64,000 bases of DNA, from positions 1 through 64,000 of the IMG/VR virus record IMGVR_UViG_3300028654_000384; one strand, written 5' to 3'. Within the stretch, counting starts at the first letter, position 1. Each line of letters begins with the position of its first letter. Of the stretch, positions 1 through 46,857 are shown piece after piece. Made by a program: the position numbers and the translations under genes. The notes below the pieces were generated by a model that was not told where the DNA came from, searched no databases, and saw only the letters and a list, made by a program, of their open reading frames with translations.

Positions 1-530
1 GTAACGGCGGCGTCGGGGGGTCGACCACCTTCGGTGCACTGGCCACCTTTCGTGGAGGTTCGGGCGGTGGAGGTGGCAACGTTACTGCGTCAACAGTCAG
101 CGGCGGCGGCCAGTGCACTCCTCTACAAGGCCCGGCCAACAACTATGCCGACGTGGAGTTGATAACAGCCGGCATTACATCAACCGTCGGTGCTTTCGTC
201 AGTTCTCCTGCAGGTGGCGGTTTCGGGTTATCTGCATCAGCGACCGGTCTGGCAGGTGCCTACAATGAAGTGGGTGCCGGTACCCCGGGCGTGGGCGGCG
301 CCGGCGCTGGGACTCACTTCGGTTCCGGCGGCGGAGGCGCGGGTCCCAATGGCAACGGAGGTGCGGGCGGTGCAGGCGTCGCGTCGGGCACCGCCAATGC
401 GGGTGGTACCGCATCGGCCAACACAGGGGCCGGCGGTGGGGGAGGCGGTAGCCAGAGCACTGCTGCCACTGCATCCGGCGCAGGAGGCGTCGGCGGTTCG
501 GGACAGTTGACAGTGGTGTGGATGGCGTGA
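1..530 (+). CDS. Gly-rich tail fibre or virion protein, 3' part only
   Basis: The frame is open from the window start (NGGVGGSTTFGALATFRGGSGG...) to TGA at 528-530; GGAGG-rich, ending in the hydrophobic C-terminus LTVVWMA. Confidence 0.7.
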   Translation, partial: NGGVGGSTTFGALATFRGGSGGGGGNVTASTVSGGGQCTPLQGPANNYADVELITAGITSTVGAFVSSPAGGGFGLSASATGLAGAYNEVGAGTPGVGGAGAGTHFGSGGGGAGPNGNGGAGGAGVASGTANAGGTASANTGAGGGGGGSQSTAATASGAGGVGGSGQLTVVWMA

Positions 531-596: not shown

Positions 597-1466
597 ATGA
601 GGGCGCTGGTGCTGTCAGGCGGTGGTGCAAAGGGCGCTTATCAGGTCGGCATCCTGAAGCGATGGATGGGCGAACTCAACCTCGATTATGACATCATGTG
701 CGGTGTGTCGGTGGGTGCCATCAACGTCGCCGCCCTGGCCCAAGAGCCCCTAGGCAACCCACGTGCCGCCATCGAGCGCCTCGAGAAGTTCTGGCTGAGT
801 ATCAACCAGTCGTCAATATTCGGGCGCTGGCGGCCCTTCGGTCGCCTCCACGGCCTGCGCACTCGTCCTGCCATCTTCGATTCGACGCCGTTGTTGTCGC
901 TGCTAGAACGCAGCATCAACGCTGACATGATCAAAGTGTCGGGTCGGCAGTTGGCAGTCGGTGCTGTCTGCATCGAGACGGGGGAATTCAACTACGGCCG
1001 CGAGACCGATGCTGACATCATCAAGTGGGTGCAGGCGTCGGCCAGCTACCCGCTGTTCATGTCGCCCGTCGACATCGGCGGCAAGCTGTGGTGCGACGGC
1101 GGCCTCAGGCACATGATGCCCATCCGTGAGGCAATCAGGTTGGGGGCAACCGAGATCGACATCATCGCCTGCAATAACCCGTCGCTGTTTAACCCATGGA
1201 AGGCCACGGGCAAGCGTGCAGTACCCGACTACGTCATCAGGATGATTGACTTGATGACCGACCAGATCCTCCGCGCTGACATGCAGCTGGTGGGCTTGAT
1301 GAACGACGTGGTGACGCGAGCCGACAAGCACCGCCACATCAAGCTGCGGATGGTGCAGCCCAAGGTCAGGCTGACGTCGAACTCCATGCAGTTCGATCCC
1401 ACCGACATCGCCCGGATGATGGAGCAAGGTTACCTCGACGCCGATACGTATGTAGTCTACGACTAG
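597..1466 (+). CDS. Patatin-like phospholipase
   Basis: GGGAKG (oxyanion loop), GVSVG (GxSxG nucleophile) and DGG (catalytic Asp) motifs. Confidence 0.9.
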   Translation: MRALVLSGGGAKGAYQVGILKRWMGELNLDYDIMCGVSVGAINVAALAQEPLGNPRAAIERLEKFWLSINQSSIFGRWRPFGRLHGLRTRPAIFDSTPLLSLLERSINADMIKVSGRQLAVGAVCIETGEFNYGRETDADIIKWVQASASYPLFMSPVDIGGKLWCDGGLRHMMPIREAIRLGATEIDIIACNNPSLFNPWKATGKRAVPDYVIRMIDLMTDQILRADMQLVGLMNDVVTRADKHRHIKLRMVQPKVRLTSNSMQFDPTDIARMMEQGYLDADTYVVYD

Positions 1467-1474
1467 GGTGACAC

Positions 1475-2002
1475 ATGACGTTAACACTGCTGCAGACCGC
1501 CAACTTTGGCACTTCGCGCGCCAATGTCACGGGTTCGTTCGGAGTGGGCTACACCGTCCTCGACGTGTCGGGCACCATCGTCACCGCCCGGACGACGTTG
1601 AACGTGTCGCAGTCGGCACCGGGCACGGGCAATTACTACGCCAACGTTACCTACCCGTCCAACTTCAATGGCCAGATCGTCTGGGACTGTCCCCAGATCA
1701 CCAGCTCACTGGGTGCGGTGTTGAGCCCGATCTATGCGTCAGAGCAGCAGAACTTTCAGGCCAACGATCCGTCGGCGGGGGCGGCCTACACGCTGTTGTC
1801 GGGCACCCTGGTGTCACAGGTGCAGGGCCTCTACGACGTCGCCTTCGGGCGGTGGAAGATCAACAAGGCGGCCAACCAGATGGTGTTCTACCGCGCCGAC
1901 AACGTCACCGTCGTCGCCACCTTCAACCTGCTCGATGACAATGGCAATCCGACGTTCGACGGCGTCTTTGAGCGCCAGCTGACTGGTGCGGTCACGCCGT
2001 GA
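1475..2002 (+). CDS. Putative virion structural protein
   Basis: Beta-rich, T/G/N-rich 175-aa ORF with phage-like codon usage, next to the neck genes. Confidence 0.6.
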   Translation: MTLTLLQTANFGTSRANVTGSFGVGYTVLDVSGTIVTARTTLNVSQSAPGTGNYYANVTYPSNFNGQIVWDCPQITSSLGAVLSPIYASEQQNFQANDPSAGAAYTLLSGTLVSQVQGLYDVAFGRWKINKAANQMVFYRADNVTVVATFNLLDDNGNPTFDGVFERQLTGAVTP

Positions 2003-2005
2003 GCC

Positions 2006-2374
2006 ATGGGCACCCCGCTCACCGATAAGATCATCACCAGGGGCATGGGTCCCGCGCGCAAGACGCCTGAGAAGGCCAGCCTCATCACCATGGGCTTTGG
2101 CCCGATCGAGGTCATCATTGCCGTCGTCGTCACCCCCGAGGAGAACCTCAAGTGGCTGACGTGGGCCCGCCTCAGGAGCGTTGACAATGCCTCGCCGGCA
2201 CAGTTGTTGGCGGCGGTGCAGGCGCAGGCGGCGTCGGGCATCAATGGCGGCCCGTTGCAGAACCCGGCATCGTGTGATTGTCCCAATGTGACGGTGAAGA
2301 CGACCGCGCCCGCACCGCTGGTGACGGGCAACGTGCCGTGGAGTCGACTACGCAACATCATGAGGCGGAGGTGA
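2006..2374 (+). CDS. Hypothetical protein (IITRGMG/LITMGFG repeat)
   Basis: Starts 3 nt after the upstream stop; two ITxGxG motifs. Confidence 0.6.
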   Translation: MGTPLTDKIITRGMGPARKTPEKASLITMGFGPIEVIIAVVVTPEENLKWLTWARLRSVDNASPAQLLAAVQAQAASGINGGPLQNPASCDCPNVTVKTTAPAPLVTGNVPWSRLRNIMRRR

Positions 2375-2408
2375 CACGAACGTCGTGATCGTCTTTCAAC
2401 ATCAAGCC

Positions 2409-2414
2409 TACTTA
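2409..2414 (+). promoter_or_regulatory. Late-type promoter motif TACTTA
   Basis: CAAGCCTACTTAGATC immediately before GTG 2419; near-identical context at 35531. Confidence 0.65.
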
Positions 2415-2418
2415 GATC

Positions 2419-3588
2419 GTGACCACGTTTAATCAGACGATCAATCCCACCGCTTTCGGCTTTTATGACGCGGACGCTGTTTTTCAGACCGAAGCCAACG
2501 CCATGGTGACGTACGTTAAAAGGCGGCTAGGTGACGACGTATTGAGTGTTGAGTTGACCTCGAAGCAGATCTGGGCGTGCCTCGAAGAGGCCACCCTCGA
2601 GTACTCACGCAACATTCAAGAGTTGAAGATTGTCAGTGACCTTGTCAATGTCATCGGGCAGTCAACGAGTTCGGTCAACATGACCAACACCTATCCCCAA
2701 CGCAGCCTCGAATTCTTGATGCGATCGTCCGACGCCTATGCCATGGCTGCCGGGGTGGGAGGCAACTTCGACACCATCCTGGGCTACATTCCGCTGATTT
2801 CGGGGCAGCAGGACTACAACCTGTACTCGTCAATGAAGACGATCGATGGCAGTCAATTGGTCATCGACTCACTGCCCGCGGGTAGCAAGGGCAAGCTGCG
2901 CGTCATCGAGCTGTTCCACTTTGAGCCCCTCGCTGCACAGTCAATGCTGCTCAACGCCAGCAACATCACCAACTTTCTTGCCACCAACTTCAACTATGAG
3001 TCCTACGTCAATAGCACGGTCTTCTACGTGCTCCCGGTCTTCGAGGACGTGCTGCGCCGCGGACAATTGAAAGAAGCTTTCCGCGTTCGCCGGTCGAACT
3101 ACAGCTACCAGATCATCGGCAACAACATCAGGATCTATCCGATTCCGATGAGTGAGTACACCGTCGGCAATATGTACCTCCGGGTCGGTGCACCTCCCAA
3201 CATCCTCGATCCGAGCTTTGAGGACGACTCGATCTACGGCATCTCGGGTCCCGAGAACGTGCCCTTCTCGCTGTTACCCTACTCGACGATCACGCTGCCC
3301 GGTCGGCAGTGGATCAGGCAGTACACGCTGGCGTTGGCCAAGGAGCTGCTCGGGTTGATCAGGAGCAAGTTTCAGACGATTCCAATCCCCAATGCCGACC
3401 TGCAGCTCAATGGACAGGAGCTGATCGCCCAAGGCCGTGAAGACAAGGACAAGCTGACGACGCAGCTCGGCGACTTCCTCAAGCAGCTGACGACGCAGGG
3501 CATGATGGCACAGCAGGCTGACATCGCCGAGAACATGCAGAAGACACTGCGGTACATCCCGTTCCCCAAGGCGATCACGTTTGGTTGA
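2419..3588 (+). CDS. Neck protein (T4 gp13-like)
   Basis: YVKRRLG..VLSVELT..QIWACLEEA and WIRQYTLALAKELLG.IRSKF..IPIP motifs; position ahead of a gp14-like gene. Confidence 0.75.
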   Translation: MTTFNQTINPTAFGFYDADAVFQTEANAMVTYVKRRLGDDVLSVELTSKQIWACLEEATLEYSRNIQELKIVSDLVNVIGQSTSSVNMTNTYPQRSLEFLMRSSDAYAMAAGVGGNFDTILGYIPLISGQQDYNLYSSMKTIDGSQLVIDSLPAGSKGKLRVIELFHFEPLAAQSMLLNASNITNFLATNFNYESYVNSTVFYVLPVFEDVLRRGQLKEAFRVRRSNYSYQIIGNNIRIYPIPMSEYTVGNMYLRVGAPPNILDPSFEDDSIYGISGPENVPFSLLPYSTITLPGRQWIRQYTLALAKELLGLIRSKFQTIPIPNADLQLNGQELIAQGREDKDKLTTQLGDFLKQLTTQGMMAQQADIAENMQKTLRYIPFPKAITFG

Positions 3589-3591
3589 TCC

Positions 3592-4050
3592 ATGCAGGTG
3601 ATGACGCTCAGAGAACTGCGGCACCGTCTTACTTTGATGATGGAGGGTGAGGATGTCGGCGCGTTCGATACTGCACGTTTGACGGTGCAATATCGGATTA
3701 TTGACGGCATGCGCATGTTCATTGATGCGCGCTTGAAGCAACCTGATTGGCTCGAGAAAGCAATAGCAGACGTTCGCCCCAAGCGCCCTGCCGTCGAACA
3801 GACTGTTGATCTCCACGGTCACGAGGCATACCTCAATCGCATGGACGCATATTTTCATGGCAAGGGCTACGGTGGTGAAGTGATGATGGCCGTCCTACGC
3901 TTTCTCAAGGATCGCGGGTATGCACGAGCACGTGGGTATATCGAGCACGCCAACATCGCGTCGCAGAGTATGATGAAGAAGGTGGGTGCTAAAGTACAAG
4001 AGCGGCAAGAACACGGCAGTTACTGGTCAATTGATCTGGAGAATGTCTGA
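3592..4050 (+). CDS. GNAT-family acetyltransferase with N-terminal leader
   Basis: FHGKGYGGEVM (motif A) and NIASQSMMKKVG (motif B). Confidence 0.75.
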   Translation: MQVMTLRELRHRLTLMMEGEDVGAFDTARLTVQYRIIDGMRMFIDARLKQPDWLEKAIADVRPKRPAVEQTVDLHGHEAYLNRMDAYFHGKGYGGEVMMAVLRFLKDRGYARARGYIEHANIASQSMMKKVGAKVQERQEHGSYWSIDLENV

Positions 4051-4721
4051 TGTCACGCCTCTTCATCACACCGCGTGAAATCGCCTTCATCAGCGACATC
4101 ACCAAAGAACTTGTGAAAGACGTCATAGGACAGTTCATCTATTACTACGCCATCAATGAGAACAAGACACGCACCGATGTCGTCTACAACGAGGCACTGC
4201 AGAAGGTCTTTGATGCACCGATCAAGCTCGATTGCCTCGTCGACGCCCACTTTCAGGCCGACACCAAGATCAATGAGTTCGGCGTCGATGCACAGTTCAA
4301 GATTGAGGCCTACATTCAGTACCGCGACCTCGTCGACAAGGGCATCAACGTCGCCATCGGAGATTACTTCAGTTTCTCGGACGTCTTTTATGAAGTCACC
4401 GAGAAGGTCTTCATGCGTAACATCTACGGCATGCCCGAGCACAAGGACGGCGTCAAGCTGATCGGTACCAAGGCCCGCGACACGCAGTTCAAGGCCCTGA
4501 CGCTCGGGCCCACCGACATCGCCCGTCCCGAGGCCGACGCGGTGCAGACGACGTTCCATCAACAGCGCGGGCAGGCGACCAATGCCGAGGGCCCGACGGG
4601 CGACCAACGCGACCTGCAGAACCCTGCCGTCGTTGGCACGCCCATCACCGGTGCCAAGGAGGTGTCTCCTAAGGCGGCAGAATTCCCTGGCGATAGTGCC
4701 TTTTATGACGAGAATGACTGA
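4050..4721 (+). CDS. Neck / head-completion protein (gp14-like)
   Basis: ELVKDVIGQFIYYY..., GDYF.F.D.FYEV pattern; stop-start overlap with both neighbours. Confidence 0.7.
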   Translation: MSRLFITPREIAFISDITKELVKDVIGQFIYYYAINENKTRTDVVYNEALQKVFDAPIKLDCLVDAHFQADTKINEFGVDAQFKIEAYIQYRDLVDKGINVAIGDYFSFSDVFYEVTEKVFMRNIYGMPEHKDGVKLIGTKARDTQFKALTLGPTDIARPEADAVQTTFHQQRGQATNAEGPTGDQRDLQNPAVVGTPITGAKEVSPKAAEFPGDSAFYDEND

Positions 4722-5947
4722 TGACGACCCGCTACACCGCTCGCTCTAAATCGCGCTTTCGAGTGCCGGGCCTGCCGTCGGGCTTTGGTACACTGCCAGC
4801 AACGACGAAGGACGGCGTCACTCTGCCCCCGGTGGGCATCGAGGACGTCGACCGTGCCCTGTTCAACCTGTTCAATGCCGAGATCCCGTTCGCCGTCGCG
4901 GGCGACGGCACTGACATCGCCAAGGTGCCCGTCATCATGGCGGCGGGTGAAAAGTGGGCCCTCAACAAGCGCATGCGTGCCGTCCGTGACCGCAACAACG
5001 CGCTGATCCTGCCACTGATCACCATCGTCAGGACGTCGATCGTGCAGGACGTGGGTGCTGACGTGACGGGCCGCGGCATCAACCAGCAGACCGGCGAACT
5101 GGTCATCCAGCGGCGGCTCGATAATTCCGACCGCAGCTACCAGAACCTGGTCAACAACCTGCTCAACACCCACAATCTCGACCTCTGTGAAAACCTGTAC
5201 CCCAACCTCGACAACAACATCTTCGAGACCATCGTCGTCCCGGCACCACAGTTCTTCACCGCACAGTACGATGTCACCCTGTGGACGCAGTACACGCAGC
5301 ACATGAACCAACTGCTCGAGCAGCTGATGGCGTCGTTCCTACCTCAGGGCAACTGCTGGCAGCTCAACACACCGAAAGGCTACTGGTTCATCGCCACCGT
5401 CGATGCCAACACCTATACGTCGGAGACCAACACCGACGACTACTCGCAGGCCGAGCGCATGGTCAGGTACAAGTTTGTCATCAAGGTGCCGGGCTACGTG
5501 CTGGCGACGGGAGTGCCGGGCGCACCCGTTCCCATTAGGCGCTACGTGTCAGCGCCGTCGATTGACTTTGTCGTCGCAGCGTCTAGCGTTAGTGACAACC
5601 TCGATCTGGGTGGTGGTGAGGACTCTGTGGCCGATCCTTTCTTGGGCGCCGATGACCCCACGTTGCCCCTCGATGCGGCGACCAGCAAGCGGCGCGATCA
5701 GCGCTTGACCAACGGCACGCGCCTGTACCCGGGTGCGGACGCCATCACACCTGAGGATCCCGCCTTGACAACGTACCCACGCGGTGTCAAGCCCCCGCGC
5801 TACGTCAAGGTGACGGGCATCGATAGCAACGGCAACACCGTCGTCAAATACGTCAGGGTCAAGACCGTCAATCCGGCAACGGGAGAGATGGTATTAGCCT
5901 CCGATGCGACGTTGGGAGGCCTGTCGATCGTCACTGTCGATGGTTGA
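4721..5947 (+). CDS. Tail terminator / tail completion protein (gp15-like)
   Basis: IEDVDRALF..F, VPVI.A.GEKW, P.F.TA.Y.VTLWTQY..HMNQLLE; lies directly before the sheath gene. Confidence 0.65.
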   Translation: MTTRYTARSKSRFRVPGLPSGFGTLPATTKDGVTLPPVGIEDVDRALFNLFNAEIPFAVAGDGTDIAKVPVIMAAGEKWALNKRMRAVRDRNNALILPLITIVRTSIVQDVGADVTGRGINQQTGELVIQRRLDNSDRSYQNLVNNLLNTHNLDLCENLYPNLDNNIFETIVVPAPQFFTAQYDVTLWTQYTQHMNQLLEQLMASFLPQGNCWQLNTPKGYWFIATVDANTYTSETNTDDYSQAERMVRYKFVIKVPGYVLATGVPGAPVPIRRYVSAPSIDFVVAASSVSDNLDLGGGEDSVADPFLGADDPTLPLDAATSKRRDQRLTNGTRLYPGADAITPEDPALTTYPRGVKPPRYVKVTGIDSNGNTVVKYVRVKTVNPATGEMVLASDATLGGLSIVTVDG

Positions 5948-5991
5948 TGCACCTACCGAACGTCGATCGGGCTTTCACGCTTGTAACCGCA

Positions 5992-5997
5992 TAGTTA
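5992..5997 (+). promoter_or_regulatory. Late-type promoter motif TAGTTA
   Basis: Upstream of SD GAGGAG (6022-6027) and sheath 1 ATG 6035. Confidence 0.6.
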
Positions 5998-6034
5998 TGC
6001 TATAGCGATTCCACGCCGTTAGAGGAGCTCGGTA

Positions 6035-9000
6035 ATGTCCGCACAAACGTTTCAATCACCCAACTTCTTCGCTCGGGAGATCGATAAGTCTGCACCCGTT
6101 CCACAGGGGCCTGTCGGTGTTCCAGCAGGAGTGATCGGCACTTCTGATAGGGGCCCGGCCTTTGTCCCGGTCACTGTCGGTAATTTCGATCAATTCATCT
6201 CGACGTTTGGTAACCTCGATCCCAATTGCTTTGGGCCCTACGCTGCCTTCTACTTCTTGGCCAACCGCAGCGCGCTGACCTTCATGCGCGTCCTCGGGGC
6301 GGGTGCTAACCAGAGCAGCTCCGACATTACGCGGACGTCGACGACGGGTCGCACCCTGAGCGCCGGCTTTCACCTCGACGGCGTGTCGCCGGCAGTGACG
6401 GGTGACAATCGCCACACGGGCATCGTTCAGTTCATCGTGGGCGTGCACACCCTGCAGCCCAATGAGGCATACGGCGCCGCCATCTTCACCGACAATGATT
6501 CCTTCCACGGTTCGACCGTCCGCCTCGTTCGCGGCATGATCATGACGCCGCAGACGGCTCGCATCATGGTGACCGACGGCAACCACGACTTGTCGGCCGC
6601 TGGGCAGATCAGCAAGTTGGTCGACTTCGGTGACCTGACGAGCACGCCAGGTTACTTCAAGTTGGTCATCAGTTCATCGTTGGGTGCCAGCTTCTACAAC
6701 GACGACGGTAATCCAGGTTGCCGCATCTTGACGGCATCGCTCAATCCTGATGACTCGCGTTACTACGCCAAGTTGTTGAACACCAACCCCGACAGCTTCG
6801 TCCTCTACCAGCACCTGCTCTATGCAGACTTTGCCGTCGACGACGAGATTGCGACGGCCACGGTCGCCGGCATCCTGTCAGGAACTGCCAACACCAGCCT
6901 CAATAACTCCGACACTGCATACGCCGGCGCGCCCTACAACGACAAGTCGACGTACCTGTCATCGTTCGGCGCCTTCGATGCGCGGTTTCAGACGCCGACG
7001 TCGACGTACTTCATCAGTCAACCCTTCGGTAATACCGAGTACGATCTGTTCGCGGTGCAGGCCCTCGATGACGGCGCCTTCGCCAGCGACCTGTACAAGG
7101 TGTCGATCGCCAACGTGCAGGCATCGACCAACCCCGCCTATGCATATGGCACCTTTTCGCTGCAGGTTCGTCAGTTCAATGACACCGACGTCAATCCCAT
7201 CATCCTGGAGCAGTTCAATCACCTGTCGCTCGATCCCACCGCGGACAACTACATTGCCGCCGTCATCGGCGACCGCCGCGTCACCTTCAATTTTGACTCC
7301 ACGTTGCAGGAGGATCGCAGGGTCATCACCAGCGGAAAATACCCGAACAACTCGACCACGATCCGCGTGGTGATGAATGACTCCGTCAACAAGGGACTGA
7401 TCCCGGCGATGGCACTGCCCTTTGGTTTCCGGGGCGCGCTGGTGCCCAAGACCAACGACACGCTGACGGACAACGCCTTCCAGGCGACCAACACCGTCCG
7501 CATCAACGGCATCTTGACGGGCAGCAACTTCGGGCAGCAGGCCCTCAGCGGTGCCATCGTGCCGCCCGTTCCCTACCGCAGCAAGGTGACGAAGGGTGCA
7601 CGGCCCTCGCCGCAGCTGTGGTTGGGCCAACCAGGCCCGGCCGAGCTGTCGAGCCCGCTGTACTACTGGGGTACGCAGTTCGAGCGCCTTGACATACCGC
7701 TCGATCCGAACAATGAATCCATTCCCAACCCGTTGATCGCGTCCTACTCGCAGTTCTTGGGCATCGCCGCCCTCGACAACCTGGTCACCGGGTCAGGTGC
7801 TGACACCCTCAACAACGACAAGTTCAGCCTCAAGAAGGTTGCCTTCTCTAACCTCAGCATCAATGACCTGACGGCGTCGATCGACACTCACATGCGAGAG
7901 GCGGCTTACATCCGCAACGGTCGCAACGACGGCGCGCAGTACACTATCAACGACGGCGTCCTGGGCAGTAGGATCACCCTCGCGACGCTGTTGGCCAAGG
8001 GCACCGCACAGCAGTTCAATCGCTTTTCGCCCTACTTGAAGTTCACCAACTTCCTGCAGGGGGGCTGGGACGGCGTCAACATCCTCGATCCCAATGCCAA
8101 GCGGCTCAATGATCGATCGACCAGCTTCGATGCCGGTGGGCAAGCGGCCGCAGGCTTCATCAGCCCGGGTTTCACCGCACTGAATCAGGCGGGCTCGGGC
8201 CAGAACAACTCGGCGGTGCAGTCGTACCTCACTGCCATCAACGTGATGACGGATCCCATGCAGGCCAACCACAACATTCTGGTGATACCCGGCATTCGTG
8301 AACCCTTCATCACCGATTATGCTGGGACGGCGATCCGCAACTACGGCCTGGCCTACTACATCATGGACCTGCAGAAGTTCGATGAATTCAGCACTCGCTT
8401 GTTCAACGACTCGACGGGATCAGCAGGTGGTCCGGCACGGCCCGACGTGCAGCAGACGGCGACGGGTCTCAACACTCGCGCCCTCGACAACAACTACGTG
8501 GGTACCTACTTCCCCGACGTCATTGTCACCGATAAGTTCAACAACCGTCGGGTCAAGGTGCCGTCGTCAGTCGCCGCACTGGGGGCACTGGCCTTCAATG
8601 ACCGCGTCGGCTACCCGTGGTTCGCTCCGGCGGGCTTCAATCGTGCCGCACTCGACTTCGTCAACAATGTCGAGGTGAGGTTGAATGCGTCGGACAAGGA
8701 CGTGCTGTACAGCAGCAGGATCAATCCGATTGCATCGTTCCCTCGACAGGGGTTCGTCATCTTCGGTCAGAAGACGCTGCAACAGTCAGCATCGGCTCTC
8801 GACCGTGTCAATGTCAGGCGCCTGTTGCTCGAGGTCAAGCGCGTCATCGTCGGCATCGCCATGAAGTTGGAGTTCGAGAACAACACTCCCGACGTGTGGA
8901 ATAAGTTCACGTCGCAGGCGGTGTTGCAGTTGGGCCTGATTCAGGCGGCAGCGGGCATCGAGGCCTTCCAGGTCGTCATGAATGAGACCAATAATTCAGG

Positions 9001-9115
9001 TGATGATCGTGACCAGAACAAGCTGAACGGCAGAATCGTAGTTGTGCCCACGCGCGTGATTGAATTCATCGCGTTGGATTTCATTATCACGAATTCCGGC
9101 GTTCAATTCGTCTAA
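6035..9115 (+). CDS. Tail sheath protein 1
   Basis: SPNFFAREID, GTSDRGPAFVP, PWFAPAGFNR, GQKTLQ...SALDRVNVRRLL, FENN and IEFIALDF sheath motifs. Confidence 0.92.
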   Translation: MSAQTFQSPNFFAREIDKSAPVPQGPVGVPAGVIGTSDRGPAFVPVTVGNFDQFISTFGNLDPNCFGPYAAFYFLANRSALTFMRVLGAGANQSSSDITRTSTTGRTLSAGFHLDGVSPAVTGDNRHTGIVQFIVGVHTLQPNEAYGAAIFTDNDSFHGSTVRLVRGMIMTPQTARIMVTDGNHDLSAAGQISKLVDFGDLTSTPGYFKLVISSSLGASFYNDDGNPGCRILTASLNPDDSRYYAKLLNTNPDSFVLYQHLLYADFAVDDEIATATVAGILSGTANTSLNNSDTAYAGAPYNDKSTYLSSFGAFDARFQTPTSTYFISQPFGNTEYDLFAVQALDDGAFASDLYKVSIANVQASTNPAYAYGTFSLQVRQFNDTDVNPIILEQFNHLSLDPTADNYIAAVIGDRRVTFNFDSTLQEDRRVITSGKYPNNSTTIRVVMNDSVNKGLIPAMALPFGFRGALVPKTNDTLTDNAFQATNTVRINGILTGSNFGQQALSGAIVPPVPYRSKVTKGARPSPQLWLGQPGPAELSSPLYYWGTQFERLDIPLDPNNESIPNPLIASYSQFLGIAALDNLVTGSGADTLNNDKFSLKKVAFSNLSINDLTASIDTHMREAAYIRNGRNDGAQYTINDGVLGSRITLATLLAKGTAQQFNRFSPYLKFTNFLQGGWDGVNILDPNAKRLNDRSTSFDAGGQAAAGFISPGFTALNQAGSGQNNSAVQSYLTAINVMTDPMQANHNILVIPGIREPFITDYAGTAIRNYGLAYYIMDLQKFDEFSTRLFNDSTGSAGGPARPDVQQTATGLNTRALDNNYVGTYFPDVIVTDKFNNRRVKVPSSVAALGALAFNDRVGYPWFAPAGFNRAALDFVNNVEVRLNASDKDVLYSSRINPIASFPRQGFVIFGQKTLQQSASALDRVNVRRLLLEVKRVIVGIAMKLEFENNTPDVWNKFTSQAVLQLGLIQAAAGIEAFQVVMNETNNSGDDRDQNKLNGRIVVVPTRVIEFIALDFIITNSGVQFV

Positions 9116-9150: not shown

Positions 9151-9876
9151 ATGTTCATCATTTACAAGCACACTAACCGTTCCAACGGAAAGGTCTATGT
9201 TGGATACACTAAGTTTACACTTGATGAACGATGGAAACAGCATTGTAAAGATGCTCGACTAGGCAGTGACTTTGCTTTTCATCGGGCGATCCGCAAGCAC
9301 GGGTTAGATGTTTGGGATCACTGTGTCATCGAAGAGTGTATTGACCTCTCCGAAGAGCAGGTCGGAGCACGTGAGATGTATTGGATAGCCGAACTTGCAG
9401 CAACGACTGACAAGCATGGTTACAACATGACGCATGGTGGGTTAAGTCGTCTCACGGTGTGGACCGAAGAGATGCGAGAGTTTCACAGGGTTAGAACCAG
9501 TGAAGGTACCAAGTTGGCGTTTCAGGATCCTGAGATTAAGAAGCGTCACCAGGTAGCAACAAAGATCGCTAGCAATAAGCCTGAAAATCGGAAGCGCAAT
9601 AGTGATGCACAGAAGATTGCTCAGAACAAGCCTGATACCAAAGTTAAGCACGCAGCTTCAATAAAACGCGCGTGGGAAAATGAGCTTCCTACGTTGATTG
9701 CACGGAGAAAACTCATTGAGCAGCTTGATTTGGTCACGAAGGTTGTAATTGCTACGTTTAGATCAGCGCGCGAGGCAGCACGTGAATTAGGACTTAGTCA
9801 AGGTAGCATCTCTAACGTTGCACGTGGTTTGACTAAGTCTGCTGGTGGTTTTGGCTGGCGCTACGTCGTCGCTTAA
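9151..9876 (+). mobile_element. Free-standing GIY-YIG homing endonuclease with C-terminal NUMOD1-type HTH
   Basis: IIYKHTN..NGKVYVGYT...RW..H, YNMT.GG, FRSAREAARELGL..ISNVARG; visibly AT-richer than flanks; TATGAT 5 nt before the ATG. Confidence 0.88.
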
Positions 9877-9962: not shown

Positions 9963-12900
9963 ATGGCGCAACTTAAGTTCGGTTCTGCAGGTGTCTCGAC
10001 GACGGAGATTGACCTCTCACAGCCCACTTCACAGCAGCCTGTCGGAGTACCCGCCGGCATCATCGGCACCGCGCTGAAGGGCCCCGCCTTCGTGCCCATT
10101 ACCGTCGGAGTGATCGACGACTTCTACGCCAAGTTCGGTCTCACTGACGGCAAAAAATTCGGGCCCATCGCCGTCTCCGAATGGCTCCGCAATGCAGGCG
10201 CCGTCACTTACCTTAGGGTCCTCGGAGTTGGCGACGGCACCACGCGCCAGACCAACGGCGACGTCAACTCGGCAGGCTTCACCGTCGGTGAACAGCAACC
10301 CAACGCGACCAACGCAGGCAGCCTGGGTTCCAATCCCTACTCCAACGTCGGCGGTGCCCTGGGTCGCACCTACTTCTTGGGCGCCTTCATGGCCGAGACG
10401 TCGGGTTCCACGTTGTTCAGCCAGGCCGGCATCAATGCTGACGTCGCGGCCTTCACCGCGGCCCCCATCGTCCGCGGCGTGCTGATGGCCACGTCGGGCG
10501 TCATCCTGACGCTGTCGTCGTCGGTGTCAGGCGTCAACAGTGCCCCTGCCTCGAACACTGCGGTGGCCACCGATGCCGTAGGCTCGCCCCTCGGCGACGT
10601 CGTCTTGATGACCAGCGGCATTGCCCGTCAGGACTTCGTGCTGCTGATCAACGGCCTGACCAACACCAATCCGCTGTTCCCGAATGTCATCACCGCATCG
10701 TTCGACATGACGGCACCCAACTACTTTGGCAACGTCCTCAACACTAACCCGCTCAACCTGTCGCAGGCCGGTTACTGCCTCTACGCAGGTTGGGACATTC
10801 ACCCGTCGACGGCCGTCGTCACCGGGTCAGGCATCGTGTCGACCAAGTACGGTGCAGGGGCGGCCACGGTCTTTGCCGCCGGCATCGAGCCTTCGGCCTT
10901 CTTGTTGACGAGTTCGCTGGCACGTGACACGGGTAACTCACAGGTGCCTGATTACGAGGACTTCCGCGATCGTTTTAGTCACGCGCGCAGCTCGTGGGTC
11001 GTCAGCCAGCCCTTCGGCGGCCAGCCTCACAACCTGTTCCGCGTCCATGCCCTCGACGACGGCCACTACGCCTCTACTCTCTACAAGCTGTCGATCGAAA
11101 ATCTGGCTTATTCGTCGGATCCCACCAACCTGTACGGTAGCTTTGACCTCGTCCTACGCCAGTGGGGCGACAATGACCTGGCACCCACCTACATTGAACA
11201 GTGGCGTGGCCTGTCGCTCAATCCGTCTGACTCACGCTACATTGCGCAGGTCATCGGTGACATGAATGCCTACTTTGACTTCGATCGTGGGCCCACCGCA
11301 CAGAAGCTCGTCATCAATGGCAACTATCCGAACGCGTCCAACTACGTCCGCATTGAGATGGATGCCAACGTCGACGCCGGTGAAGTCGATCCGACGGCGC
11401 TGCCCGTCGGCATCCGTGGCGCCCGCCACCTCATCACTGCGGGGTCAGGCACCCTGGCCGCGCCGACCAATCGCATCGTGTCGGGTAGCAACAATGAACT
11501 GTTGATCAGCTCGACCGTTGCCTTTGCGTCGACGGTCGAGCCGCCGGTGCCGATGCGACAGAACTTGACGCAGGGGTCGGGCGCCAAGTTGCAGGTGCAG
11601 CCGCTGTTGTACTGGGGCGTGCAGTTTGAACACGTGCCCGCCGTCGCCACGCCCAATGCGACGTCGCAGCCCAACAATTCATTGAAGTCGTTCGCCAAGT
11701 TCTTCCCCGAGATGAGGACGGACATTCAGAACTTCCGGGTGGGTGATAACCCGGGTGCAGTCACCAGCGCCGGCGCCGTCGTCGACGCCGACAAGTTCAA
11801 TCTCAACATGTTCACCCTGATGAACGTGCAGGTCGTCACCAACTCGGCGGGCACCGCCGATCCCAACCAGTGGGTCAATGCAACCTACGTCCGCAATGGC
11901 AACATTGTTACCAACAACGTCGCGGCAACGCGGGCCTTGCTGACGACGGACTTCATTCAGGCCAACCGCCGCTTCTTGAAGTGGTCGTTCTTCATGCAGG
12001 GTGGTTTCAGCGGCGTCAACATCTTTGACAACGACGAGGCGACACTCTCTAACGCCGCCGTCGAGGCCGACATGAATGCGACCAACCGCGGCTTCAACGT
12101 GGGCCCGACAGTGTCGGCCTACGCCAAGGCTTTGCAGGTGATGGGCGACGTCGCCGGCGTCGACATCGAGCTGTTGGCCGTCCCGGGCATCAGGCACCCC
12201 GTCGTCACCGACAATGCGATCGCGACGGTTGAGCAGCGCTTTGACGCCCTGTTCATCATGGACATTGAACAGTACGATGTCAGCAATCAGGCAGTGACGT
12301 CGGACAGCCAGCAACCGTCGGTGACGCTGACGGCGGCCAACTTCGCCTCCCGTGCCGTCAACAGCAGCTTCGGTGCCGCCTACTTCCCCGACGTGGTGAT
12401 GCCCGATCCCAACACCGGCACCAACCTGTACGTGCCGCCGTCGGTCGCCGTCCTGGGAGCACTGGCCCTCAACGATGCAGTGGGTCACCCGTGGTTCGCT
12501 CCGGCGGGTTTCACTCGCGGAGCGCTGCAGACGACGCTTGAGGCCCGTGTCAAGCTGTCGAAGACCAACATGGACGTTCTGTACGATGTCAACGTCAATC
12601 CGATCGTTGCCTTCCCGGGCAACGCGACGGGGGGTACCAACCCGAAGGGTGGAGTGGTCGTATGGGGTCAGAAGACTTTGCAACAGGCGGCATCGGCCCT
12701 CGACCGCGTCAACGTTCGTCGCCTGCTGATTGAGATCAGGCGGCAGGTCAGGGACATCTCCAACACTGTCATATTTGAGCCCAACCGCGACGCTACGTTG
12801 GCGGCTTTCTCGGCCGCCGTCACTCCGGTCCTTCAAAGGATCCAGGCACAGGCAGGTCTCGAGCGCTTCAAGGTCGTCATCGACAGCAGCACCACGTCTC

Positions 12901-13013
12901 AGCTCGATGTAGAAAATAACACAATTCGTGGAAAAGTGTTTGTCATCCCGACGAAGAGCATCGAGTATGTTAGCATTGACTTCATCGTGACCAACGCGCT
13001 CAACCAACAGTAA
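9963..13013 (+). CDS. Tail sheath protein 2
   Basis: SAGVSTTEID, GTALKGPAFVP, PWFAPAGFTRG, WGQKTLQQAASALDRVNVRRLL, FEPN and IEYVSIDF motifs. Confidence 0.92.
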   Translation: MAQLKFGSAGVSTTEIDLSQPTSQQPVGVPAGIIGTALKGPAFVPITVGVIDDFYAKFGLTDGKKFGPIAVSEWLRNAGAVTYLRVLGVGDGTTRQTNGDVNSAGFTVGEQQPNATNAGSLGSNPYSNVGGALGRTYFLGAFMAETSGSTLFSQAGINADVAAFTAAPIVRGVLMATSGVILTLSSSVSGVNSAPASNTAVATDAVGSPLGDVVLMTSGIARQDFVLLINGLTNTNPLFPNVITASFDMTAPNYFGNVLNTNPLNLSQAGYCLYAGWDIHPSTAVVTGSGIVSTKYGAGAATVFAAGIEPSAFLLTSSLARDTGNSQVPDYEDFRDRFSHARSSWVVSQPFGGQPHNLFRVHALDDGHYASTLYKLSIENLAYSSDPTNLYGSFDLVLRQWGDNDLAPTYIEQWRGLSLNPSDSRYIAQVIGDMNAYFDFDRGPTAQKLVINGNYPNASNYVRIEMDANVDAGEVDPTALPVGIRGARHLITAGSGTLAAPTNRIVSGSNNELLISSTVAFASTVEPPVPMRQNLTQGSGAKLQVQPLLYWGVQFEHVPAVATPNATSQPNNSLKSFAKFFPEMRTDIQNFRVGDNPGAVTSAGAVVDADKFNLNMFTLMNVQVVTNSAGTADPNQWVNATYVRNGNIVTNNVAATRALLTTDFIQANRRFLKWSFFMQGGFSGVNIFDNDEATLSNAAVEADMNATNRGFNVGPTVSAYAKALQVMGDVAGVDIELLAVPGIRHPVVTDNAIATVEQRFDALFIMDIEQYDVSNQAVTSDSQQPSVTLTAANFASRAVNSSFGAAYFPDVVMPDPNTGTNLYVPPSVAVLGALALNDAVGHPWFAPAGFTRGALQTTLEARVKLSKTNMDVLYDVNVNPIVAFPGNATGGTNPKGGVVVWGQKTLQQAASALDRVNVRRLLIEIRRQVRDISNTVIFEPNRDATLAAFSAAVTPVLQRIQAQAGLERFKVVIDSSTTSQLDVENNTIRGKVFVIPTKSIEYVSIDFIVTNALNQQ

Positions 13014-13056: not shown

Positions 13057-13848
13057 ATGTTCATCGTCTACAAGCACATCAATCGAGTCAACGGCAAAGT
13101 GTACATCGGTTACACAGCCAATGGGGTCGATGAACGTTGGCGTGGGCACTGTTATGCCGCTTCTTCAGGTGAGGAGCTCGTGTTTTCGCATGCAATTAGA
13201 AAGTACGGTGTAGATGCCTTTGCACATGATGTGTTAGAGACATGTGCGACAAAGCAACAAGCGTGTGAGGTTGAAATTCGATTGATCGCCGAACACAACA
13301 CCATGGTTCCGCACGGCTATAATATGACACACGGTGGTGAGCGTCGGGTCGGAGAATGGAATCCGATGGCCAAACTCACCGAAGATGATGTCCTTACGAT
13401 CAAGAATACGTGGAACACTCTGCGGCTCGATAATGCGGACGTAATTGGTGACTTCTATCGTCGCTTTGCTCAGAAGTTGAGTGTGACTGCAGACTTGATC
13501 TGTCAAATCATCAAGGGACGATTGTGGTCTCATGTTGGACCTGAACTTGTGAATGTCAACGTGAGTCACCGCGGCAAGGGCAAAGCTGCAGGTGAGAAAA
13601 TGAAGCAACGATGGGCCGACGCGGAGTTCCATGAAGTGCAATCACTCAAGCGCCGCGGCGAAAATAACGGTAGATCAGTGGTGACCGAAGACATTGTCAG
13701 GGCACTGCGCCTTGAGTTCGATCAGCTTGATACGAGCACTAAAGGTGTTACCAAGTCGTTCTGCGTGAAGCATGGTGAACGTCTCGGCGTGACCAGTGAG
13801 AACATCTATGGCATCGTCAAGCGCAAGTCGTGGAAAAACGTCGTCTAA
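13057..13848 (+). mobile_element. Free-standing GIY-YIG homing endonuclease with two HTH-like modules
   Basis: IVYKHIN..NGKVYIGYT, GYNMTHGG, KLTEDDV..I and I.GIVKRKSW; AT-richer than flanks. Confidence 0.88.
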
Positions 13849-13878: not shown

Positions 13879-13910
13879 TGTGCGGGTGCCGACCATACTT
13901 ACTCCTCATG
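13879..13910 (+). promoter_or_regulatory. Late-type promoter block (TACTTA 13896-13901), imperfectly repeated at 18546
   Basis: TGTGCGGGTGCCGACCATACTTACTCCTCATG versus TGTGCGGGTGACGAATACTTACTTTCATCATG. Confidence 0.7.
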
Positions 13911-14195
13911 AAGCTATCGGCACTGCGCCTTGTCGTCCGCGAAGAGTTGTCCCGTCTCAACGAGGTTTCCTTCGCACAGGCGGGTGCCGATCAGCCCCTG
14001 ACGCAGTTCATCAAGCACCTCAACATGGCCAAGGCCGACCTGAATGAGCTGTTTCAACAGACGACTGACACCAAGGCCGGCAATACGGCGACGAAGCTGC
14101 TCAACCAGCTCAACGCCATCATCCTGTCGCTCGACCATGCACCTGAACTGACGAAGAACCCGTTCGCCGACGCGGGACGAAAGGCACGCCGATGA
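13908..14195 (+). CDS. Leader-bearing hypothetical protein (MKLSALRLVVREE)
   Basis: Start reassigned to ATG 13908, just after the late motif. Confidence 0.7.
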   Translation: MKLSALRLVVREELSRLNEVSFAQAGADQPLTQFIKHLNMAKADLNELFQQTTDTKAGNTATKLLNQLNAIILSLDHAPELTKNPFADAGRKARR

Positions 14196-14557
14196 AGCTC
14201 TCACAGAAGCAACTACGACAGATCATCAATGAAGTTGCAGGTCAGAGGATGACCGAGGCCGGCGACGACGGGCGGACGAGTTGGTCACGTGGGTACCGCA
14301 CGGGTGCAAACGAGCCGGACTACGAAGAACTCGGTGGCGCCCTCGCCGGTGCCGTCGTCAACAAGTTGACCAAGAACGTGCAGGATACCATTGACAGGAT
14401 CGTCGAGCACGTGTCGCCCGATGTTGAATTGCCGGCGCGCCTTGAAGACCTCGAAGCTGCAGCCTACGATATCGTCGAAGGGGCGATGCCGATGATCAGG
14501 GACGCGCTTGAGCGGTTGGCCGAGGCGCTGCTACGTAGTCTGATGAACCCCGAGTGA
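14192..14557 (+). CDS. Leader-bearing hypothetical acidic protein (MKLSQKQLRQIINE)
   Basis: ATGA overlap with the upstream gene. Confidence 0.7.
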   Translation: MKLSQKQLRQIINEVAGQRMTEAGDDGRTSWSRGYRTGANEPDYEELGGALAGAVVNKLTKNVQDTIDRIVEHVSPDVELPARLEDLEAAAYDIVEGAMPMIRDALERLAEALLRSLMNPE

Positions 14558-16213
14558 TCAGTAACTGATCTCGTAGGTCAGGTTCTTGCAACCGTAGATC
14601 CTGACGACGCCCGCTTCTTGTGCGACTTGTGCTTCTGTCAATCCCCGCGACTTATCAGCCTTGTACTTGAAGCGATTGAAGCGGTGATTGAAGTCCGTCC
14701 ACCAAAAGCGAGGTGGTGATTCACCTGTCTGGTGCCACCCTGCAGATGACCAACTGTTTGACGCACCCAAGCGGGTGTCGACGTATGACAATAGCCTTTG
14801 GCATCCCAGCTCTTTGGCCCTTGCTTGGGCACTCGATGTCAGCCTGCTCAACGCCCCGGGCACGTTGGTGCCAACCTTAGTGCAGAAGCGGGCAATTTCG
14901 AGGGCACCCTGGTGTTTCTTGTGCAGTGGCGTACGTATTGATAGTGCGGTGATGATTTCACCATTGTGACTCAATCCCAGTGCCCACGATGCCTGTGTGT
15001 CGCCGTCAATGTGATTGCGAGTGAAGAAAGATCTACGTTCAGCAGTATTGAGCTCGACGATGCTGCACTTGCGTGCTCCGACCATTACAGGCGTCAGGCC
15101 CAATCGGTGCGAGATCATAGATTCAACGATCGATCGCTTGTCACGCCACTCATCTTCAAAGACGTGGAGCAGGGTGATGCCCTTCGCTCTACACAGGTCG
15201 GTCTTGTTCTGGTGGTAGATCGCCGACTTGTGGACGATGCTGTGCCAGTAGAGGCCGTTGTACTCGATCGCTAGCGACACAGCAGGCACGAAGATGTCGA
15301 GCTCGAGTCCCTCGATCTGACCGCGATCGTTGGTGGTGATGTCGCTCGTCAATTCCCTGACATAGTTCGCAACGTCCTGTTGCCCTCGGCTACCACCGGG
15401 ATCACAGGCATAGCACCGTCCGTGTTGCAGGCGCCTGAGCGAGCTCGTCCACTGGACCCCGCACTGTGAGCATGCGACTTCAATATTGCTTGTCTTGTCG
15501 TCGACGTATGAATTTAGGCTGTCATTGATCACGCGCAGCGTGGTGCCTTCCTCGATGCGGACCTTGACGTCATCGACCTTCAATCTCTTCATGTCGTCGA
15601 GGTGTTGCCTGAGCTTGGCCTGTGAGTGAGCCAGCGAGACCTTCGCTGCCATGTCCTTGATCCTCTGATCATTCTCCTTGTTCAGGCCTTTGGCCCAGGG
15701 CGTCAGTTCGCCCGAAGCAAAGCGTCCACGTTGATTGTCAGCGAATTCTTGTAGCCTCGAGTCAGTCTCCTTGGTCAGGCCCTTCGACCACGCGACGATG
15801 GTACCCGCATCGAATGCTGCCTGGCGACCCACGCTGGTGGCTTGAGCGCGAGCTGCGACGCGCTCGTCAGTTTCCTTGGTCAGGCCCTTTGACCAACTCT
15901 CTTTACCTACGAGCTTCTCACGTCGTTTTTGTGAGATCTCCTCGGCTTTATCGGCGTCGTACAATGCGTAGATGTTGCCATTGTGGCCGCGCAGTAGGTT
16001 GCCATAGCCTTGTCGCCAACCCAACCATGTGGTGACTTGTTGGCACCCACAGGCACATAGCTTGGGACCTGAATTGAGCTCATTCCATAACGTTTGTGAA
16101 GACGTCTGGTGTGCTGTGGTCAGGTGGGTCTCAAAAGTTGTCTGGCGCTTCGATGAGAATGAACTGCACAGTGGACAAGTGATGGGTTCGACTGTCTGAC
16201 CTAGTTGTGCCAT
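14558..16213 (-). mobile_element. Hef/Vsr-like endonuclease: Zn finger, WxKGLxKE repeats, nuclease domain, C-terminal GNAT/Mom-like domain
   Basis: CPLC..HLTTAH, CACGC, three W.KGL.KE.D.R repeats, ELDIFVP..IEYNGLYWHS, FF..NH..G, E..RFC and LSYVD.R.G motifs. Confidence 0.75.
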
Positions 16214-16846: not shown

Positions 16847-16876
16847 TTGTACAACTTACGTGGGTCGTGGTACAAT
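16847..16876 (+). promoter_or_regulatory. Leaderless promoter TTGTAC-18-TACAAT
   Basis: -10 ends 6 nt before ATG 16883. Confidence 0.55.
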
Positions 16877-16882
16877 TGTGCC

Positions 16883-18545: not shown

Positions 18546-18577
18546 TGTGCGGGTGACGAATACTTACTTTCATCATG
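18546..18577 (+). promoter_or_regulatory. Late-type promoter block (TACTTA 18561-18566)
   Basis: Imperfect copy of 13879-13910. Confidence 0.7.
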
Positions 18578-19012
18578 CAGCTCACCGAACGTCACCTCCG
18601 CGACCTCATCGGTCAGGTCATCACTGAAGCCAAGGGCAAGGATCGCGGCGCCGACGCTGCCAAGCAGGTGGCTGATGCTATCAAGGTGCTCATCACGGTG
18701 GGCCCCAAGGTCGAGAAGTACTTTGAGGAGAAGTTGTCTATGATGACGACGATCCCCGCTATGTTCTCTGACGAGCTCGAAGTAGAACATGTTGTCGACA
18801 AACTGCGTAATCTCATTGATAAGGCGGTGGAGCTCGACGATGTCGTGGTGCCTGTATACAAGGCCGCCGCAAAGGCTGCGCCCAAGGCTCCCACCCGCGA
18901 CCGCTCTCGCGGCCGCCTGGCCAACGCCAATCCTACCGCCGACGAGCGTTCACTGGGACTAAACAAGCGTCGTGAAATTCGGCGTCAGGCACGTGAGCGT
19001 GGTCGGACCTAG
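18575..19012 (+). CDS. Leader-bearing protein with a basic C-terminal tail
   Basis: MQLTERHLRDLIGQVITE; Arg-rich end (KRREIRRQARERGRT). Confidence 0.7.
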   Translation: MQLTERHLRDLIGQVITEAKGKDRGADAAKQVADAIKVLITVGPKVEKYFEEKLSMMTTIPAMFSDELEVEHVVDKLRNLIDKAVELDDVVVPVYKAAAKAAPKAPTRDRSRGRLANANPTADERSLGLNKRREIRRQARERGRT

Positions 19013-45889: not shown

Positions 45890-46258
45890 ATGAGGGTCAG
45901 TTACCGCGCACTGAAGAAGATCATCCGTGAAGTGGCGCTGTCGCCCTCCGTCTTCAAGAACAACCACGTGGTGCAGGATCCCATGGATCGGCCCAACATC
46001 GCGCAGGCACTGACGGCGTTGGAGCAGCCCTTCAAGACTGGGTTGGAGACCAACCTCGTCCTCGATGCCCGTGACAGCTACGACGAGGAGACGCGGGAGC
46101 TCGACGATGCCGAATACGCGAGGATCAAGGACGTGGCGGCGAAGGCGACTGAGTTGATGCTGGCTCGCGCCCACAAGGCGGTGCAGGCGTCGTGGGCCGA
46201 GGCGATGAAGGGCGTGGGCAGCGCCGACAAAGCAACCGTACAGAAGAAGGTGGCGTGA
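45890..46258 (+). CDS. Leader-bearing protein (MRVSYRALKKIIRE)
   Basis: Directly after the late motif and SD. Confidence 0.75.
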   Translation: MRVSYRALKKIIREVALSPSVFKNNHVVQDPMDRPNIAQALTALEQPFKTGLETNLVLDARDSYDEETRELDDAEYARIKDVAAKATELMLARAHKAVQASWAEAMKGVGSADKATVQKKVA

Positions 46259-46853: not shown

Positions 46854-46857
46854 TCCA

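Follow-up and report, generated by a model that had tools for sequence, protein, structure and literature searches.

The DNA considered here, referred to below as the window, comprises the first 64,000 nucleotides of IMGVR_UViG_3300028654_000384, an IMG/VR virus record with 215,857 bp and a completeness of ~63 %. An open reading frame (ORF) on the plus strand of the window, at 3592..4050, lies between two T4-like neck genes and encodes a protein of 152 residues, a leader remnant included, which by its modelled structure is predicted to be a compact RimI-like GNAT acetyltransferase. Packaging of this protein in the virion and its injection together with the DNA are probable. Judged from the sequences, a fair statement is that the GNAT gene family of the window clade is leader-tagged, and that the window copy retains the leader in degraded form, the putative cleavage position reading Met-Met-Glu. 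Head targeting by the leader, cleavage, retention, injection and the substrate are all what we infer from the observations that follow.

An earlier note on this DNA had recognized a GNAT fold, and this was confirmed by an AlphaFold2 model, by the Pfam matches of relatives and by profile matches in the PDB. Taken alone, the ORF gave thin evidence: it matched PF13302 over aa 86-134 only (27.1 bits, with the cut-off at 25.4; E 7.9e-6), and a word-based search with it returned just two relatives. An exhaustive profile search returned 97 cluster representatives at E <= 1e-3, including 60 at E <= 1e-10. Among 57 stand-alone members, 42 matched PF00583 (best 1e-9) and 36 matched PF13302, whilst the family profile matched 26 GNATs in the PDB, the best being the chlorovirus polyamine acetyltransferase A654L (E 2.4e-7). 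AlphaFold2 run on the family alignment gave a mean predicted local distance difference test (pLDDT) score of 92.7 and a predicted template modelling score of 0.83. The catalytic domain, aa 21-152 (3652..4047, plus strand), was confidently modelled, beginning with strands at 21-26, 30-37 and 41-48, a helix at 53-61 and strands at 68-75 and 78-86. The model places the acetyl-coenzyme A (CoA) pyrophosphate-binding loop at H89-G-K-G92-Y-G94 (3856..3873, plus strand), between strand 78-86, the equivalent of the fourth strand, and helix 93-107 (helix 3). The loop is intact and, apart from a His instead of Q/R at its first position, follows the pattern (Q/R)-x-x-G-x-(G/A) of GNAT motif A; the ORF carries GKGYGG at aa 90-95, and the consensus of the relatives is GKGYG. 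The strand-helix block Y116-I-E118-H-A-N121...G132 (3937..3987, plus strand) was aligned by Pfam GNAT models and PDB profiles as the motif B region; it includes NIASQSMMKKVG at aa 121-132 and has the family consensus YIE..N..S..M..KLGF. Residues G92, E96, Y116, N121 and G132 were kept in at least 90 % of the 57 relatives.

The modelled protein has the GNAT core fold, a mixed sheet with the CoA-binding half of helix 3, strand 5 and helix 4, and lacks the canonical N-terminal arm of strand 1, helix 1 and helix 2. On the model, the N-terminal half is best described as a variant and not a different fold. Structural alignments covered 106-121 of the 132 domain residues. The top-ranked matches were protein N-acetyltransferases, the closest being N-alpha-acetyltransferases of ribosomal proteins (RimI-, RimL- and RimJ-like), and the Foldseek matches also included streptothricin and nourseothricin acetyltransferases. 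With structural neighbours of this kind, an amino group of a protein is the more likely substrate.

The gene is tightly packed among its neighbours. Directly upstream, a gp13-like neck or head-tail adaptor gene (2419..3588, plus strand) matched phrog_211 (head-tail adaptor Ad2, E 1.8e-13), carried PF26809 (Phage_T4_gp13) in the precomputed annotation and was 31 % identical to its homologue in Microcystis phage Mel-JY01. Directly downstream lies a gp14-like neck gene of 223 residues (4050..4721, plus strand), which had no Pfam match of its own and was assigned by synteny with Mel-JY01 (E 4e-11). It was 78 % identical to the gene that follows the GNAT orthologue in contig L003, and its neighbours in the language-model-based ESM-Atlas included clusters with PF11649 (T4_neck-protein). 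The stop codon of the gp13-like gene (3586-3588) is 3 nucleotides before the GNAT ATG, and the GNAT stop overlaps the gp14-like ATG by 1 nucleotide (TGATG, 4048-4052). The same type of overlap recurs at the 4721 junction with a gp15-like tail sheath stabilizer or tail terminator gene (4721..5947, plus strand; PF16724, 25.0 bits, at the cut-off; phrog_227). Within 2419..5947, no promoter-like or terminator-like sites were found beyond chance. The earlier descriptions of the gene as wedged between two neck genes and translationally coupled to them are therefore fair. In Mel-JY01 nothing separates the gp13-like and gp14-like genes, and the GNAT gene is therefore an insertion in the window lineage. 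In every informative context the stand-alone gene lay inside a late structural module, either after a gp13-like gene (the window, L003 and L116) or in a baseplate module beside a gp25-like gene (L115).

The shared leader was defined by a motif scan and by a hidden Markov model (HMM) built from 12 other ORFs. It is a 14-residue pattern at the Met start, M-[KRQ]-[LT]-[ST]-x-x-x-L-[KR]-x-[LIV]-I-[RN]-E, whose consensus end, [LIV]-I-[RN]-E, has Glu in at least 90 % of cases. Eighteen ORFs of the record scored at least 9 bits, all of them at the Met start and 17 of 18 on the coding strand, as against none among reversed and shuffled ORFs, where the maxima were 6.0 and 7.7 bits. When left out of the model in turn, 9 of the 12 seed ORFs still scored at least 16.7 bits. 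The proteins are small, about 88-217 residues. Leader ORFs occupy four regions of the window (13908..14557, 18575..19012, 45890..47151 and 62933..63747), with at least nine further ORFs elsewhere in the record. The seven canonical ones of the window, all on the plus strand, begin MKLSALRLVVREEL (13908..14195; 13.9 bits with the leader HMM), MKLSQKQLRQIINEV (14192..14557; 30.7 bits, 23.6 on leave-one-out), MQLTERHLRDLIGQV (18575..19012; 26.1 and 10.1 bits), MRVSYRALKKIIREV (45890..46258; 26.8 and 18.5 bits), MVKLSVKQLRNLIREA (46506..46853; 26.3 and 21.2 bits), MQTTLGKLKYVISEV (62933..63415; 26.6 and 20.1 bits) and MKTTISKLKQLINEH (63412..63747; 27.7 and 21.2 bits). None of the seven contained a Pfam domain. 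We considered whether the leader might be a nucleotide-level signal and rejected this, as it is the amino acids that are conserved, K alternating with R and L with I and V.

The GNAT had been described as the only leader-bearing cargo with a recognizable catalytic domain. That holds within the window and fails for the genome, where a 190-residue NUDIX hydrolase (E 7e-18) at record positions 115824..116396, outside the window (locus L021), bears the canonical leader MASDRDLLRQLIREV and is by its sequence a candidate second leader-tagged enzyme cargo. A protein with DnaJ and WGR domains at record positions 77892..78983 on the minus strand (L016) has a weakly leader-like N-terminus of 5.5 bits, which is probably a chance resemblance.

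The earlier note had also stated that the shared leader precedes the GNAT itself, and here the outcome was mixed: the leader family is real and the orthologues carry it, but the N-terminus of the window GNAT keeps anchor residues only and scored 0.0 bits. When the first 60 residues of the GNAT ORF were compared by BLAST with every ORF of the record, no significant paralogue emerged; the leader came to light through the motif scan and the HMM only. The remnant comprises aa 1-18, MQVMTLRELRHRLTLMMEGE (3592..3645, plus strand), with a putative protease site at M16-M17-E18 followed by G19. Of the leader anchors it keeps Leu9, Arg10, Leu15 and Glu18 only. The kept residues correspond to the invariant Leu, the Lys/Arg and the terminal Glu of the leader, with a four-residue insertion common to P0002 and P0004. 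The orthologue P0003 begins MTVKQLRRLIRES (15.2 bits) and P0002 begins MRTTLGKLRMLVERLIREA (13.6 bits), whilst P0007 has a canonical leader by sequence, MRITVSQLKALVREA. In a three-way alignment of orthologues, T5, L9, R10, L15 and E18 were invariant. AlphaFold2 gave aa 1-20 a pLDDT of 61-69, with a detached helix of low confidence at aa 6-16. The possibility that the N-terminus forms strand 1 and helix 1 of the GNAT fold was rejected, as the model puts residues 1-20 outside the fold.

Across the wider family, the conserved domain starts at an (E/D)-(T/S)-x-R-L motif and the sequence before it varies by lineage. An N-terminal extension of six residues or more is present in 51 stand-alone members, and in 34 of these it contains hydrophobic-x-Glu, against 19.6 expected from windows of the same length elsewhere in the same proteins. 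The extensions fall into at least three unrelated classes, namely class A (MKLAELFES, MKIASLFES), the T4-like class B (MKSVEFIAEA, MRATEFIVEA, MRTREFIVES, MISFKQFLAEE) and class C of the window clade (MTVKQLRRLIRES and relatives). The class B leader of P0032, MKSVEFIAEA, is close to the MKTYQEFIAE of T4, with which both ipII and ipIII start, as we confirmed on the T4 sequence. On the contig of P0032 (L012), neighbouring genes share the class B leader (MRAAEFIFEA, MKLVEFSNLKE, MRFNQILFEH) and include an ART-PolyVal ADP-ribosyltransferase.

Some 20 members of the family occur as domains of larger proteins, 400-2200 residues long, and fusion to head-module domains is recurrent, in chains of 800-2200 residues. 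Of the 16 multidomain members scanned, seven carried a MuF domain (P0019, P0058, P0060, P0045 and P0077), a MuF_C domain (P0080) or a portal domain (P0055). Other domains resident in the fused chains were ART-PolyVal, ADPrib_exo_Tox, anti-CBASS Acb1, a C39 or LF-like peptidase, SNF2, topoisomerase IB and nucleotidyltransferase. By their domain make-up, the fused proteins have the polyvalent-protein architecture of Iyer et al. (PMC5512222). In one polyvalent protein, the metagenomic P0077 (2231 residues), two GNAT domains stand together with two anti-CBASS Acb1 domains, a MuF domain and an intein, which makes it a striking candidate for an all-in-one injected counter-defence protein.

The same type of leader was found beside head genes in other phages. 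LR756508.1, a 484-kb uncultured phage related through its gp13-like gene, gave 19 leader HMM matches, and its ORF map showed more than 25 small genes starting MKLTERKLR.IIKEE. These genes are sited between the portal and S77 protease genes, just after the protease gene and just upstream of the gp13-like gene, with arrays at 143.5-162.8 kb and 187-195 kb (L031 and L032). On an unrelated marine T4-like contig (L049), six leader genes follow directly after the protease gene (array at 1356..4559); the leaders of these arrays read MKLTERKLRxIIKEE and MKLTKSQLKEIIREE. In T4, prohead core genes occupy the positions that match those of the leader genes in LR756508.1. The S77 protease is encoded by the three nearest relatives, Mel-JY01, LR756508.1 and the immuto phage. 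Pfam searches of ten leader proteins of LR756508.1 found no domain, and a leader protein of L049 had no relatives in cultured phages. As judged from gene order, the genomic company of the leader genes supports a head function. As a separate observation, LR756508.1 has intein- or homing-endonuclease-like insertions that break up both its portal gene and its protease gene.

We propose the following course of events. The GNAT gene would be expressed late, transcribed and translated together with the neck genes, and its N-terminal leader would direct the protein into the prohead core, as the T4 capsid targeting sequence does for internal proteins. A T4-type (S77) prohead protease would then cut the leader off after the conserved Glu18 (M-M-E, then G), and the folded domain of ~134 residues would stay in the DNA-filled head. 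Ejected with the genome into the next host, it would use host acetyl-CoA to acetylate an amino group of a host protein before phage gene expression, in take-over or counter-defence. To this whole chain, from late expression, leader targeting and S77 cleavage through retention and ejection to acetylation of a host protein, we give somewhat less than an even chance. The idea of an injected acetyltransferase in the earlier note is supported in part: it gains substantial indirect support from the fold, the leaders of orthologues and of other family members, the MuF and portal fusions and the late modules, but the degenerate leader of the window copy and the lack of a protease or capsid gene in the 216-kb record count against it.

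Several observations weigh on the opposite side. The N-terminus of the window GNAT had an E value of 110 with the leader HMM, its score lies below the null maxima and its putative P3 residue is Met, not Leu or Ile; the leader tag of this copy may be non-functional. The MKLT...IRE leader could also mark prohead core or scaffold proteins that are degraded and not retained. A Tyr in helix 4 is the general acid in many GNATs; this family has Met at its position, and acetyltransferase activity is therefore not guaranteed. Pfam searches with S77 and Gp23 found neither a Peptidase_S77 prohead protease nor a gp23-type capsid gene in the 216-kb record. The head module of the window phage must lie in the ~143 kb outside it, and in a metagenome scan based on an alignment of the protease, close relatives of Mel-JY01 were all that came back, this module not being among them. 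The GNAT locus was found in none of the RNA runs. No family members were found in cultured phages, so that no virion proteome bears on the family. Megablast and tblastn searches of 50,697 phage records with the locus and with the family members P0036, P0046 and P0058 gave no GNAT-domain match. The family and leader profiles gave no match in Mel-JY01, the immuto phage, Alice, RsoM2USA and Atu_ph07 except one weak leader match in the immuto phage, blanks of a kind that show nothing by themselves.

The alternative that survives best is a late cytoplasmic enzyme that is never packaged. Made along with the structural proteins, it would acetylate proteins of the virion, for instance at an N-terminal Ser, Thr or Ala in the neck, tail or sheath, much as RimI, RimJ and RimL act on ribosomal proteins, or else a host protein late in infection, and the N-terminal helix would be a decayed remnant. 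We regard this as unlikely, albeit a serious contender. The 0.0-bit leader of the window GNAT, the closeness of its structure to N-alpha-acetyltransferases of ribosomal proteins, its co-translation with neck genes whose products start MS.. and MT.., and the location of the gene in structural modules in four contexts all fit such an enzyme. It accounts less well for the canonical leader kept by orthologues and the invariance of Glu18, and for the occurrence of the same domain in unrelated elements, devoid of a T4-like neck, where it is fused to MuF or portal domains and to counter-defence enzymes. On L012, moreover, the GNAT sits among other leader-tagged enzymes and not among structural genes, and the homologous necks of Mel-JY01, the immuto phage and LR756508.1 do without it.

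A second alternative retains packaging and changes the substrate: the enzyme, injected or resident in the capsid, would act on a small molecule such as a polyamine, an antibiotic-like compound or a signalling metabolite. We judge this improbable. The top-ranked structures are protein N-acetyltransferases and Iyer et al. put the GNATs of polyvalent proteins in a RimI-like clade (PMC5512222), although the best PDB profile match is the polyamine acetyltransferase A654L (E 2.4e-7) and streptothricin and nourseothricin acetyltransferases are among the Foldseek matches. The fold alone does not tell these substrates apart.

More improbable still, in our estimate, is that the protein is an accessory of the prohead core and is never delivered, the leader taking it into the scaffold core to be degraded or expelled at maturation, as are gp22, gp67 and gp68 of T4. 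The leader ORFs of LR756508.1 and L049 do stand where prohead core genes are placed, either between the portal and protease genes or beyond the latter. Conservation of the CoA loop and of residues in the catalytic region would, however, be senseless in an enzyme destroyed in a compartment without acetyl-CoA, and a compact 15-kDa fold without an internal conserved cleavage motif resembles the T4 internal proteins that are retained; the fusions of the GNAT to effector domains likewise speak against it. Finally, the earlier note had allowed for action on tRNA, and GNAT toxins that acetylate aminoacyl-tRNA do exist, but apart from small size nothing recommends a toxin of the TacT or AtaT type, which we consider very improbable given flanking neck genes with no antitoxin-like neighbour, no such toxin among the 50 best structural matches and no toxin-family match in Pfam or NCBIfam.

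Beyond these genes, the structural block of the window includes a patatin-like phospholipase gene just upstream of the neck genes (597..1466; PF01734, E 2.7e-36) and two full-length tail-sheath paralogues, both phrog_23, of 1026 and 1016 residues (6035..9115 and 9963..13013). Each sheath gene is followed by a GIY-YIG homing-endonuclease gene (9151..9876 and 13057..13848), and in the ENA contig L007 of the same phage the second sheath gene is called as two pieces (700 and 313 residues). Glycine-rich low-complexity ORFs with GGxGG runs are present at 3..530 of the window and at 1304..2827 of L012, the contig of the GNAT relative P0032. Two related contigs, L002 and L116, have DUF7487 genes at the flanks of the GNAT gene, and the window ORFs at 14558..16213 (minus strand) and 16847..18538 (plus strand) have a Cys/His-rich, zinc-finger-like N-terminus similar in look to DUF7487 genes; such genes and their look-alikes may be mobile genes that shuffle the GNAT region. 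In the 359-kb contigs L007 and L008, 10 kb upstream of the window start (1527..6939), a gene for a 2512-residue protein is followed by seven genes for proteins of 237-271 residues without Pfam matches, possibly a paralogous array of tail-fibre or decoration genes.

The identical GNAT protein was found on more than 24 contigs. Because two of these are ~359 kb in length, the source is an uncultured huge soil phage with a genome of roughly 359 kb. The locus was present in at least 16 rhizosphere metagenome runs.

Injected proteins act before phage gene expression, which makes them prime candidates for anti-defence and host take-over functions. To our knowledge, very few are known outside T4, P1, N4 and the phiKZ group, and huge phages are almost all uncultured. 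It is a tentative and rather doubtful generalization, but a possible one, that the leader MKLTxxxL[KR]x[LIV]I[RN]E is a general tag for capsid targeting and protease release in an extensive branch of T4-like and huge phages whose members are mostly uncultured, and that the GNAT is a widespread injected effector, loaded by interchangeable means that differ between phage lineages (three or more unrelated leaders, or fusion to MuF or portal domains), which within seconds of infection acetylates a host protein of defence, transcription or translation. If the tag is read in this way, the injected proteome could be read from sequence, amounting to ~20 proteins in the window phage, the GNAT and the NUDIX hydrolase included. 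Were the leader a head-targeting tag, injected proteins could be listed in the same manner for hundreds of environmental T4-like and huge phages, and the GNAT family would be a recurrent injected enzyme. The practical value of the window gene itself is lower, owing to its degraded tag and uncultured phage.

Three things appear to be new: the delivery of a family of stand-alone RimI-like GNATs by short leaders that are interchangeable, the presence on some members of a tag close to the T4 type, and the candidacy of the MKLT...IRE leader as a tag for head targeting among T4-like and huge phages that are uncultured. Limited searching of the literature found no description of this last leader. Phage GNATs that modify host proteins were already known (Rac), and injected GNAT modules had been predicted in 2017. 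We know of no report of Rac being packaged in a virion.

The closest known counterparts are the internal proteins of T4, which are packaged into the prohead core and ejected with the DNA; those of T-even phages are diverse and have only the targeting tag in common (PMC9026906, PMC3012670). The 10-residue capsid targeting sequence of IPIII suffices to load foreign proteins into the prohead core, its residues 8 and 10 governing cleavage by gp21 and its earlier residues governing targeting (PMC9026906, PMC3012670). Like that tag, the leader of the window phage is a short N-terminal sequence on otherwise unrelated, small and diverse proteins, with an N-terminal hydrophobic anchor followed by hydrophobic-x-Glu, the pattern of gp21 cleavage (Leu/Ile-x-Glu in T4). 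In contrast to it, the leader of the window clade has 14 residues and a different sequence, and the cargo is an enzyme whose fold is not known from any T4 internal protein; the leader of the window copy is degenerate, and the system is predicted from sequence. The earlier note had drawn its analogy with Alt, the ADP-ribosyltransferase of T4, but the internal proteins with their capsid targeting sequence are the better analogy; Alt has its own 7-residue propeptide (PMC9026906) and, unlike the leader proteins of the window clade, no shared tag.

Polyvalent proteins offer a second comparison. Iyer, Burroughs, Anand, de Souza and Aravind argued in 2017 that these are packaged and injected, described RimI-like GNATs among them, "typically" beside an ADP-ribosyltransferase domain, and noted solo GNATs among late structural genes, 'suggesting deployment in the capsid' (PMC5512222). 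The domain of the window GNAT was likewise found by profile search in giant proteins fused to MuF or portal domains, whereas the window protein is stand-alone, with 152 residues, and would be delivered by a leader tag instead of by fusion. The family profile did not match Mycobacterium phage Alice, cited for the second of the two published GNAT families. These findings link the T4 capsid targeting sequence with Aravind's polyvalent proteins, which had been described separately, the same cargo domain apparently being delivered by either route.

As an enzyme, the window GNAT differs from RimI, RimL and RimJ, with which it shares 10-17 % sequence identity, in its rebuilt N-terminal arm, where three strands and a single helix, and not strand-helix-helix, precede the two strands that run up to the CoA loop, and in having Met instead of the helix-4 Tyr. 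Rac, as cited in PMC7824862, is a GNAT of phiKMV-like Pseudomonas phages that acetylates the alpha subunit of RNA polymerase; on that account it resembles the window protein in being a phage-encoded GNAT and is used for take-over of host transcription. By analogy with Rac, a host transcription protein is a plausible kind of target. As to delivery, phiKZ and SPN3US have many inner-head proteins with N-terminal propeptides, which are cleaved after Glu by a T4-related prohead protease before the proteins are ejected into the host (PMC5694885). Those propeptides are lineage-specific and mostly of 100-130 residues (PMC5694885), whereas the leader described here is short, like the T4 tag.

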